From Octopus sinensis (Eukaryota), in contig NC_042998.1 of assembly GCF_006345805.1 (NCBI RefSeq), forward strand, positions 152,582,001 through 152,646,000: a stretch of DNA of 64,000 nt, given 5' to 3'. The position numbers were made by a program, and so were the translations under genes. Every line of letters begins with the position of its first letter. Position 1 is the first letter of the stretch. Shown piece by piece: positions 4,035 through 24,258 of this stretch. Under the pieces are notes generated by a model. It was not told where the DNA came from. It ran no database searches and saw only the letters and a list, made by a program, of their open reading frames with translations.

Positions 4035-4280
4035 GGGCATATGGCATAGTGGTTAAGAGTGCAGGCTACTAACCCCAAGATTCTGAGTTCGATTCCAGGC
4101 AGTGACCTCAGTAATAATAATAATAATAATAATTATAATAACATCGAAAAATACCTTAGGAATGAGAACCCAGGTTCGAAATTTCCCCAAGACACCTGAT
4201 GAAGGCTGGAGGGTATATCAGCTGAAACATGTTAACAACAAAGAATATGAGGACAAATATCCTTCAAATGTAAATAATGT
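4035..4280 (+). mobile_element. tRNA-headed SINE with internal (TAA)n and a hammerhead-like tail
   Basis: A box TGGCATAGTGG at 4042, B box GAGTTCGATTCC at 4085, (TAA)n at 4112-4141, then ACAC-CTGATGA-A-GGCTG-N10-CAGCT-GAAA-C at 4192-4228. Confidence 0.75.
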
Positions 4281-4671
4281 ACCTCATCTCTTAAATAAAG
4301 GACTGTACCCCACTTTTATTCACTACTTACTGTATCCATCCTTATGTGTCTCTAACTTCCATCTCTGTCACTGTATATCCTTCCAGTTCTTTGAACCACT
4401 TCACACATCATATCCTTAAGTCTCATCTATGTATTAATTTGATATATACTGTTGCTCTCCACATTTTCTGCACTGCCACCTATCACCTTCTTCCTATACA
4501 ACATCTGTTTCTTTCCCACCCCAACTCATACTAACCATCAACCACACCTTTGCCCTTGTTCACCATTCACTACATTCACCTCTCGTGAATTTTAAACACC
4601 TACCCTTCCTGGTTTTCTGTCTTCATACTCACTTCTCAGCTTATATCTTGAGAGTATGCCTTGACATTGTA

Positions 4672-4746
4672 TCATCAAAGTGGGACTGAACCCAGAGCCA
4701 TGTGTTTCGGAAGTAAACTTCTTACCACACAGCTATACCTGTGCCT
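4672..4746 (-). mobile_element. tRNA/CORE-type SINE head fragment
   Basis: Same family as 34470-34626, 35020-35177 and 45030-45163 (gtgggactgaacc...cttcttaccacacagc). Confidence 0.65.
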
Positions 4747-21372: not shown

Positions 21373-21472
21373 NNNNNNNNNNNNNNNNNNNNNNNNNNNN
21401 NNNNNNNNNNNNNNNNNNNNNNNNNNNNNNNNNNNNNNNNNNNNNNNNNNNNNNNNNNNNNNNNNNNNNNNN
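21373..21472. other. Assembly gap (100 N)
   Basis: Run of N. Confidence 1.
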
Positions 21473-24258
21473 CAGCCAGTCCATTTATCTGTCTACTGGA
21501 AAACAAGCACTCATTCACTCACGCACATCTTTAGCACGTACTCTCACTCATTCGTACACTCATACACATACACGCAAAACGCACGCGTTATATTCATACA
21601 TACATACCCTCTACATACATTCACGTATTACACATACGTACGCGTACCTACAGATTATGTCTACACTCTTAGAAGGCTAGTCTATATATATATACCAATA
21701 AATATAAATGACACACACATACATTACACCTACATACAAATACATACATGTATATATTATATATATAATATAATATATATATATATATACACACACATAC
21801 ATACACATACACATATATACAACACAATAAGATACACACACATATACATATATATACACTAACGCACATACACATGTACATGCGTAACCATAACACACAC
21901 ACACACGCGCGCATCCATATATACACATAAGTACACACATGCGTAAAGTATACATATAATCTATGCTTACACATACACACAACACACACGCGCCTCCTTT
22001 ATTCATACTTACATGCATACTCAAAATAAGTAAATAGTAAAAATATATATACGCGCAGTTATTCGTACATGCGTACTCAAAAAATAAATAATAAATATTA
22101 AAGTATATGTACGTGCAGTTACCTATTATATAGACGGATACATACATATAAACTTACACACATATATATATATATATATATATATATATATTATATACAT
22201 CTATACACATACAAATACACATAATATATACATACACATATATATACACACACACACATACACATACATATATACATATATATACTTATTACACACATGT
22301 ACATATAAATACACACATAGATAACTCTACGTACCTACATATGCATAAACACACGAGCGTACGCGCATATTTACATATACACATACACATACACACGCAT
22401 ATATATACATACATACATACACATACACACATGTATACACACACACACATATATATATATTTATATATATATATACATACATATACACATATATATATAT
22501 ATACATATATATATACATATACATATATATATATATATACATATACACACACATACACATATATATACACACACACACCACACATACATACACACATACA
22601 TACACATAACATACATATACACACACGTATACACATATAATATAATAACATACACACAACATATATACATGTGTGCAAAAATACAACATTCTCATACAAG
22701 CAGACACACTTACATTTACATATATACACACATTACACACATATATACATACACATATAACATACATACATACATACATACGTATATGCATACATACACA
22801 CACACACCATACATATAATATATATATATACATACATACATACATACATATACACATACCCATACATATATATACACACATATACATATACACATGCACC
22901 ACGACTTACATATCTTCACTCGCATATACATATATATATATATATATATATACTTTACATATACACACACATACATATACCTATATAATGTATATATAAC
23001 AATACACATATATACACATCTATAATTTGTATCTACACTCACATACCTGCACATACACATAACTCTACATACCTACATATACATCGACATACTCGGTACA
23101 CTCATATATATACACATATATACATATACACACACACATACATATACATATACATATAATAAATATTACATACATAATACACATATACACAACATACATA
23201 TATGCATAACATATATGTATATATATATATATATATATTATATAATACACACACACCACACACATACATATAATATATATTATATATATATATTATATAT
23301 ATATATATATATATACATACATACATACATACCCATATACATAAGTACATATACACATACACCCACACATATATACACACACATACATATACAACACACT
23401 GAGGGTAACAAAAAAAGTTAATTAGTTATTAATCAATTTCACCAGTATTCAGTATGTAAAAGGACCATTATTTTTATGAGTAAACAATGTCTGAGGGAAA
23501 ATATTCTCTAAGTAGTGGAAGAGGCTAAAAAAACTTTTTTGGCTGCTATTTCTAGAAAGTTCATATTCGGCAAAGCAATCCATTTCACTAAGCCCTAATT
23601 ATATAATATTTTATACAACATACACATACATACACACATACAGATACACATACATATGCATACACACATGATACACATATACAAGCGTGCACATACAATA
23701 TGTGAGAGGTCTTAGGAGAAAAGGTAATCGGGGGTGCTAGGGGAACGGTGGGTTTGGGGGGTTTTTGTGGGTGGGGTGTCATCAATCTGGTTGCCGGGTA
23801 GGTCTATAGTTCTTGTAGTTCGCATACTTCTTATGCATACAATTTGGGGAGTGTTCTGAGATTTTGTTAAGGAGAGGGCCTTTGGCGAACAAGATCTCTA
23901 GGCTCTCCGATATGCAGAGGTCACAGCAGGTATGGCCTCCTGTGTACGAGCGCGCCTTCTGTAGTAGTTTCCACTTGGTCTCCACTAGGAACTCCATCCC
24001 CTTCAAGACCAAGTGGAAACTACTACAGAAGGCGCGCTCGTACACAGGAGGCCATGCTATGCCGACCCCCAAAAAAGTCCCCTGCCTAAATGTATAAATG
24101 CCAATACAATTCTTGTTAACTAGCTTCCTGAAGATTTCTCTTGAATGAAACAGTTAGTCCTGTAGAAGCTCCTTCTATATAATAAATTAATTTTACTCTG
24201 CTATGTATTGAGTACCTTATTACTGTGGTTAAACCCCGAATCAACCCGGGACCATACA
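21473..24258 (-). mobile_element. PLE family B copy: GIY-YIG C-terminus and CA/TG-rich 3' region on minus strand, inverted junction, then + strand pLTR
   Basis: Minus strand KWKLLQKARSYTGGHTCCDLCISESLEILFAKGPLLNKISEHSPNCMH...* (stop 23782-84). 21473-22290 mirrors 15690-16575. pLTR at 24060-24258. Confidence 0.82.
24122..24170 (+). ncRNA. Hammerhead ribozyme, PLE-B third copy
   Basis: Identical to 17401-17451 except loop III is TTAGTC. Confidence 0.7.

Follow-up and report, generated by a model that had tools for sequence, protein, structure and literature searches.

Endonuclease-bearing Penelope-like elements (PLEs) are defined by the combination of a reverse transcriptase (RT) with a GIY-YIG endonuclease (PMC4209133, PMC8557442). 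For the hammerhead ribozymes of these elements a short palindromic helix III and a dependence on dimerisation have been reported; for single motifs no cleavage was seen in vitro, and that of dimers was slow (PMC4209133, PMC6765202). The G10.1-C11.1 pair of these ribozymes was reported to be highly conserved by Cervera & de la Pena (PMC4209133). In Anolis, a PLE hammerhead cleaves in vitro; RNA-seq gave no ends at its site, and insertion in vitro did not depend on hammerhead cleavage (PMC11167929). PLE insertions themselves are described as inverted, 5'-truncated copies with a preference for (TA)n targets and with resulting trouble for genome assembly (PMC8557442). Here a stretch of 64,000 nucleotides (nt) from Octopus sinensis was analysed (NCBI RefSeq assembly GCF_006345805.1, contig NC_042998.1, positions 152,582,001 to 152,646,000 of the forward strand); it is called the window below and its coordinates are counted from its first letter. 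The window contains the gene STK19, and within one intron of that gene lie four hammerhead motifs which, on sequence grounds, belong to the known PLE-associated class. They are likely to be passengers in the STK19 pre-mRNA, and little or no effect upon STK19 output is expected from them.

The window was scanned with a descriptor in which CUGANGA, helix II, GAAA, helix III, U-H and helix I were all required. Exactly four full type I hammerheads were found, and these are four of the six sites listed in a preliminary description of this DNA. Three are on the + strand, which is the sense strand of STK19 (13395..13485, 17401..17451 and 24122..24170), and one is on the - strand, antisense to the gene (15412..15462). 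The C3 of the core falls at 13401, 17407 and 24128 (+) and at 15456 (-), while H17, the position of predicted cleavage, is at 13479, 17445 and 24164 (+) and at 15418 (-); the three + strand positions are exactly the cleavage sites that had been proposed. In each of the four motifs the core C3-U4-G5-A6-N7-G8-A9 ... G12-A13-A14 ... A15.1/U16.1-H17 is intact. It is clear that this number of motifs exceeds chance: windows simulated with first- and third-order Markov models held 0.03-0.12 relaxed hammerhead matches per 64 kb, and a stem I of at least 6 bp together with a stem III of at least 4 bp was seen in 0 of 300 simulated windows. A version of the descriptor without the U.U option at positions 10.1/11.1 misses the hammerheads of PLE loci.

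The four motifs fall into two families. Family A is the motif at 13395..13485, with the layout UUUUAG-CUGAUGA-G[long helix II, ~40-nt loop insert]U-GAAA-CGAUCG-UA-CUAAAA; its helix I is of 6 bp, helix II of 7 or more and helix III of 4 bp as a palindrome, the 15.1-16.1 segment ACGAUCGU being a perfect palindrome of the dimer type. Family B comprises the remaining three, numbered copy 1 (15412..15462, -), copy 2 (17401..17451, +) and copy 3 (24122..24170, +). Copy 2 has the layout AGCUUC-CUGAAGA-U[UUC-UCUU-GAA]U-GAAA-CAG-UUCUAGUC-CUG-UA-GAAGCU, with a helix I of 6 bp, a helix II of 3 bp plus the U.U and a helix III of 4 bp, and the hammerhead of copy 3 is the same apart from a loop III that is 2 nt shorter.

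A covariance model, R1, was made from 54 unique hammerheads flanking PLE open reading frames (ORFs) in other contigs, with the sequences of the window left out, and was run on the window with filters off. Family A scored 30.1 bits (E 3.7e-6), copies 1 and 2 of family B 37.5 bits each (E 2.6e-8) and copy 3 37.8 bits (E 2.1e-8), against a best other match of 13.7 bits (E 0.22); PLE-locus hammerheads outside the training set score 28-45 bits. The separation of the motifs from this background agrees with the PLE type to which they had been assigned.

General models did much less well. No hammerhead family, HH9 and HH10 included, was matched in the window by Rfam at the gathering threshold, and a search of the first 32 kb at E<=10 returned no hammerhead, solely TA/GT microsatellites resembling mir-297. 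A local Rfam search aligned 13395-13485 with Hammerhead_1 (RF00163) end to end at 22 bits, against a gathering score of 34; the score stays below gathering because of a 54-nt insertion in loop II relative to Hammerhead_1. For family B the local search (441 nt, E<=10) gave no match. Two contigs of PLE relatives that were scanned, L001 and L002, gave no Rfam hammerhead either, though both have descriptor and R1 matches, and detection of this hammerhead class needs a clade-specific model, as Rfam misses it. Dozens of sub-threshold matches to mir-297, mir-3149, mir-1277 and mir-466 were also returned in 13500-18500 and 21500-25300; all are in TA/GT microsatellites and are composition artefacts, not microRNA genes.

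The relatives from which R1 was made are those of a decayed PLE ORF, with RT/GIY-YIG coding sequence, several frameshifts and AT-rich expansion, at 9159..11981 (+) in the window. Its homologues number 938, are of about 700 amino acids and reach E values down to 5e-101; they are assigned to PF26215 and PF28514, the one domain seen in a Pfam scan was GIY-YIG, in homologue P0079, and a Pfam search with single pieces of the ORF gave no match. The comparison set consisted of 82 contigs encoding relatives of this ORF. In these contigs there are 71 descriptor matches and 89 R1 matches, nearly all on the strand of the ORF, and the hammerheads lie either ~70-500 nt beyond the end of the ORF or in front of its start; tandem units recur with a period of ~2.4 kb. 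Relatives in L002 (hammerheads at 1511, 3939 and 6367), L003, L010, L030, L035 and L036 form head-to-tail arrays of that period with one hammerhead per unit; these array-forming relatives stem from marine and other metagenome contigs. Many relative contigs of ~2.4-2.6 kb have a hammerhead at both ends, as expected of collapsed tandem arrays.

Two features of family B are explained by this comparison. Among the 54 unique relatives the 10.1/11.1 pair (alignment columns 14 and 38) is U.U in 24, GC in 19, GU in 6 and AU in 5, and U10.2-A11.2 and G10.3-C11.3 are retained. The string GAAACAG...CUGUA is common to family B and to many relatives. Judged from the alignment, the U.U of family B and this string are signatures of the PLE clade and not defects, and U.U at 10.1/11.1 may be an under-described natural variant.

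The two remaining sites of the preliminary description did not survive, so that three of its four sense-strand folds and one of its two antisense copies stand. Hammerhead-like strings that lack helix I or have a mutated core occur at chance level and should not be counted. The string at 4192..4245 (+), in intron 2, has a core and a bulged helix II; helix I is absent, there is no R1 match, and one third of random windows hold a string like it. It is a chance-level string. The string listed at 24494 on the - strand, antisense to STK19, is like a minimal hammerhead (24484..24532), with the core CUGUUGA, in which A6 is changed to U. A6 is an essential base of the hammerhead core. R1 gave 8.5 bits and an E of 6.8 for this string (24493-24532), the local Rfam search left it unmatched, and a null tailored to it gave 0.075 per window; the core is dead and the string could be a relic or a product of chance.

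The family B hammerheads are carried by an ORF-less repeat of ~300-400 bp, present three times in the window. Copy 1 (15395..15705, -) is a 5'-truncated PLE 3' end and forms an inverted arm to copy 2 (17142..17560, +), which consists of a T-rich stretch, a possible ORF end, a 3' untranslated region, the hammerhead, ~110 nt and then (TA)n. The possible ORF end is a weak trace of 10 codons with its stop at 17286-17288, 112 nt before the hammerhead; it fits the PLE consensus end ...KFLLxN.... Copies 1 and 2 are head-to-head inverted arms which differ at 2 of ~197 positions in their unique part, and the wider inverted repeat of 14275-15705 and 17142-18551 encloses a 1.4-kb microsatellite core. Copy 3 (24056..24281, +) is 95-97% identical to copy 2 and has an internal deletion. 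The copies are therefore not in tandem: 1.4 kb separates the inverted pair, and copy 3 follows beyond an assembly gap, at a distance of at least 6.7 kb. All of the family B copies, and family A, adjoin (TA)n.

Beside copy 3 there is further PLE coding sequence. A remnant of the C-terminus of a PLE GIY-YIG endonuclease, of 70 codons, lies at 23791..24006 on the - strand (E 9e-9), and overlaps a palindrome of PLE endonuclease-coding sequence at 23932-24055 (124 bp, 87% self-complementary), where two 5'-truncated PLE copies in inverted orientation probably meet. The + strand piece of endonuclease-coding sequence in one palindrome arm (23990-24049) is directly upstream of copy 3, and the other arm runs on into the - strand remnant. 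The architecture of the window, with its inverted arms, (TA)n flanks and nearby gap, matches that of the PLE insertions described in PMC8557442. Family B was also considered as a short interspersed nuclear element with an antisense hammerhead, on account of an A-rich stretch on the opposite strand; this was ruled out by the ORF-end and endonuclease remnants on the same strand as the hammerhead and by the comparison with PLE loci.

Alternatively, family B could be a non-autonomous derivative of PLEs that moves and spreads by itself, either like a retrozyme or as a solo pseudo-long terminal repeat (pLTR), and not mere 5'-truncated debris. An ORF-less unit of such a size, found three times with an identical ribozyme, would fit this explanation, and animal retrozymes are reported to be derivatives of PLE pLTRs (bioRxiv 10.64898/2026.07.22.740005). 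However, the copies are not tandem, the nearly identical inverted pair resembles a single insertion event, and copy 3 adjoins an endonuclease remnant, as expected of a truncated PLE. No genome-wide copies were retrieved, and exact-pattern scans of metagenome and viral contigs gave no further copies of family B. A self-spreading family B is accordingly thought improbable, and its copies are better read as 5'-truncated PLE 3' ends.

The gap itself is a placeholder of 100 N at 21373-21472, with satellite sequence to its left and microsatellite-like sequence to its right. The left flank (to 21372) is a ~380-bp satellite with other arrays at 18511-19900 and, inverted, at 52498-59398, while the right flank (21473-22426) matches 15694-16570 in inverted orientation at 77%. 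An overlap between the two flanks was looked for and none was found; the sequences are unrelated. Because the flanks share nothing, continuity across the gap is not established, and both the spacing between 17401 and 24122 and the length of the intron are estimates. The motifs at 13395, 15412 and 17401 are on the left contig together with STK19 exon 4 and that at 24122 is on the right contig with exon 5; despite the gap, each motif is intronic and on the strand given above.

These flanks raise the question of whether the region of copy 3 is an assembly artefact, an uncollapsed allele or mis-joined contig of the 15.4-17.6 kb region, in which case there would be one sense copy of family B. The unrelated flanks, the inverted match with which the right contig opens, the close identity of copy 3 to copy 2 and the known tendency of PLE insertions to break assemblies (PMC8557442) all point this way. 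Copy 3, however, has its own 2-nt loop deletion, its own internal deletion and an adjacent endonuclease palindrome, and is joined to exon 5, correctly oriented, without interruption. An artefact is thus improbable here, and copy 3 is treated below as a separate copy.

The satellite was observed in its own right. Its arrays at 18511-19900 and 20963-21372 (+) and at 52498-59398 (inverted) share ~90% identity between the two places, one being in STK19 intron 4 and the other ~30 kb downstream in the opposite orientation, and the left edge of the gap is inside the satellite. Short internal tandem units, translating as ...VFMCHRHRCQ..., characterise a further repeat family, which is dispersed on both strands at 19901-20963, 62361-63069, 51278-51515, 25456-25645 and 142-313.

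STK19 was defined by tblastn with STK19 proteins together with a reading of splice sites. It is a + strand gene of seven GT-AG exons (400-550, 2903-3054, 5342-5483, 7503-7599, 27210-27366, 31815-31903 and 32925-32967), with an intact ORF of 276 amino acids that matches Pfam Stk19 at 1.8e-32. Intron 2 spans 3055-5341, and intron 4 (7600-27209, GT-AG, 19,610 nt with the 100 N counted in) holds all of the genuine motifs. The gene, its strand and the assignment of sites to introns 2 and 4 had been correctly recognised before, and the reading frame is unaffected by the gap because the gap is intronic.

Other mobile sequences were noted in and around the gene. A non-LTR (long terminal repeat) retrotransposon at 59395-62214 (+) has an intact ORF of 675 amino acids, its best homologue being 56-60% identical; homologues of this ORF have Exo_endo_phos, RVT_1 and PHD domains. 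Older fragments of the same family lie at 26802-27132 and 29768-29904 (-), one of them just upstream of STK19 exon 5, and at 30098-30538 (-), in intron 5, there are ORF pieces which by eye resemble a mariner-type transposase (...WPHTT...HPPYSPDIA...).

The two families differ in their predicted capacity to fold. In family A helix III requires a second copy, since its 15.1-16.1 segment is palindromic, and no dimer partner was found within the window. For the monomer, the ribozyme-compatible fold is predicted at -9.0 kcal/mol, compared with -14.3 kcal/mol for the minimum-energy fold, a difference of 5.3 kcal/mol. In family B the 15.1-16.1 segment is of 14-16 nt and is not short and palindromic; no dimer is needed because the 4-bp helix III with its loop of 6-8 nt can close as a monomer. 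A short palindromic stem III and a dependence on dimers, which had been put forward for these motifs in general, hold for the literature and for family A and not for family B. The suggestion that two family B copies pair in cis was likewise overstated: a monomeric helix III is possible and the spacing between the copies crosses the gap. A heterodimer of families A and B was ruled out, as their helix III segments are non-complementary.

It does not follow that the family B monomer would be an effective ribozyme. Helix II is merely U-A, U-A and C-G, the minimum-energy fold pairs AAGA of the core with UCUU, and the active fold makes up ~2% of the predicted ensemble. Furthermore, there are no loop-loop contacts. 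Minimal hammerheads without such contacts need high Mg2+. For copy 2 an additional obstacle is predicted, as the duplex between the unique parts of copies 1 and 2 is calculated at -370 kcal/mol, whereas the ribozyme fold reaches -7 to -9 kcal/mol. The proposal that the inverted copy at 15412 masks 17401 is therefore thermodynamically sound; masking would be expected, given the great stability of this predicted duplex and the transcription of a near-perfect complement (2 differences in ~197 positions) 2 kb ahead of copy 2. On these predictions 24122, 3 kb before exon 5, is likely to be the sole copy that is free of duplex.

These considerations bear on the possibility that the motifs are host-regulatory intronic ribozymes, whose cleavage competes with the splicing of intron 4 and whose inverted copy is a double-stranded RNA, ADAR-sensitive off switch. 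Three motifs with intact cores are on the sense strand within one intron, helix III of family B can be formed as a monomer, and the only nearby antisense partner of the 24122 ribozyme is 15412, for which pairing with 17401 is predicted to come first. There is also a precedent in the intronic ribozyme of CPEB3, whose self-scission is tuned to splicing, is timed against transcription of the downstream exon and modulates the yield of mRNA (PMC10919898). Against such a role are the very slow in vitro cleavage by PLE hammerheads (PMC4209133, PMC6765202), the 3-bp A/U-rich helix II of family B with its U.U in place of G10.1-C11.1, its want of loop-loop contacts and its competing AAGA:UCUU pairing, and the missing dimer partner of family A within the window. 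In addition, retrozymes are depleted from Xenopus introns (2026 preprint, bioRxiv 10.64898/2026.07.22.740005), and therefore active sense-strand ribozymes appear to be selected against rather than recruited.

Conservation does not favour a host role either. An R1 search of 10 kb on either side of STK19 exon 5 in one other species (L083) found no PLE hammerhead, and in the nearest relatives identified the alignment is confined to exon 5 (84.6%), their introns being not alignable. Moreover, cleavage inside an intron need not block splicing, as the exon-tethering work of Dye et al. in 2006 is reported to have concluded. Nothing supports cleavage of these motifs in vivo or an effect upon STK19 output; the proposed race between cleavage and splicing is speculation. 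A host-regulatory role is consequently considered very unlikely. Very unlikely as well is the particular case in which 24122, made competent as a monomer by its enlarged loop III, cleaves some of the nascent STK19 pre-mRNA while 17401 is silenced in a duplex and maybe edited by ADAR.

The explanation preferred here, and considered likely, is that the motifs are PLE hammerheads carried as passengers. Each PLE unit would have one hammerhead ~70-500 nt downstream of its RT/GIY-YIG ORF and on the ORF strand, and the ribozyme would serve the retroelement's own RNA, the processing of tandem PLE transcripts being its proposed role. Family B would then be the ORF-less 3' end of a PLE, left as 5'-truncated copies in an inverted, (TA)n-embedded arrangement, and family A would be an isolated fragment of a PLE 3' end, or else would belong to the decayed PLE at 9.2-12.0 kb as its displaced 3' end. 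That the motifs are passengers is inferred because family A has no second copy in the window, 17401 is predicted to be locked in a duplex and 24122 would be a slow minimal ribozyme at best.

Several observations weigh against this explanation. Compensatory changes were seen at 12 of the 14 modelled pairs in the 54-sequence alignment, and these are partly circular as the descriptor demanded pairing. The helix III loop of family B exceeds that of all relatives, in which the whole 15.1-16.1 segment is of 8-10 nt, and so large a loop could confer monomer competence, so that activity of 24122 is conceivable on the predicted folds. Family A shares its strand with the 9159-11981 ORF and lies 1.4-1.5 kb past its end, compared with a median of ~150 nt in the relatives; that it belongs to this PLE copy is plausible but unproven. 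Between the ORF end and family A nothing PLE-like was detectable, and tblastn of 12.9-13.4 kb, just upstream of family A, gave PLE coding matches at chance level only. A hammerhead adjacent to the ORF was looked for at 11.9-12.3 kb and upstream at ~9.0 kb, and neither a CUGANGA core nor an R1 match was present. Finally, the copy counts for both families are those of the window only.

Many animal genomes hold thousands of PLE hammerhead copies, of which some are expected to lie in introns in the sense orientation; finding them there is a matter of routine annotation. If 24122 were active on STK19, it would be the first transposon-borne hammerhead to modulate a host gene from an intron, and it would provide an in vivo readout for the activity of PLE ribozymes, which is still undocumented.

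Of the known systems, the ribozyme of CPEB3 (PMC10919898) shares with this locus the idea of intronic self-scission, as proposed for STK19. It is, however, of another class, being like that of hepatitis delta virus, is conserved in mammals and has been experimentally tested, and nothing comparable is known for PLE hammerheads. The amniote hammerheads HH9 and HH10 (de la Pena & Garcia-Robles 2010, cited in PMC6765202) resemble the motifs described here in being sense-strand intronic hammerheads of protein-coding genes with a proposed effect on pre-mRNA processing. They are ultraconserved and single-copy, have tertiary contacts and cleave fast, whereas the motifs of the window are borne on repeats and give no sign of conservation. 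The animal non-LTR retrozymes (PMC7229834; bioRxiv 10.64898/2026.07.22.740005) are closer: like family B they are repeats without an ORF, a few hundred bp long, with a type I hammerhead and kinship to PLE pLTRs. In contrast to family B, whose copies are inverted or dispersed, they are arranged in tandem, each unit having its own hammerhead, and they give rise to circular RNAs.

The closest resemblance is to the hammerheads of PLE pLTRs (PMC4209133), from which the motifs depart in a few respects. Family B keeps ACAG...CUGU and yet has a loop III of 6-8 nt with which a monomeric hairpin is possible; the conserved G10.1-C11.1 is replaced by U.U in family B and by G.U in family A; and family A has a ~40-nt insert in loop II. 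There are likenesses as well. Both are of type I, helix I being open and 4-6 bp long and loop-loop contacts being absent; R1 scores of the window motifs are high; a position 3' of an RT/GIY-YIG ORF and on its strand would probably be shared; the near-palindromic 15.1-16.1 segment recurs in family A as ACGAUCGU; and both occur as scattered solo copies and in inverted or tandem arrangements.

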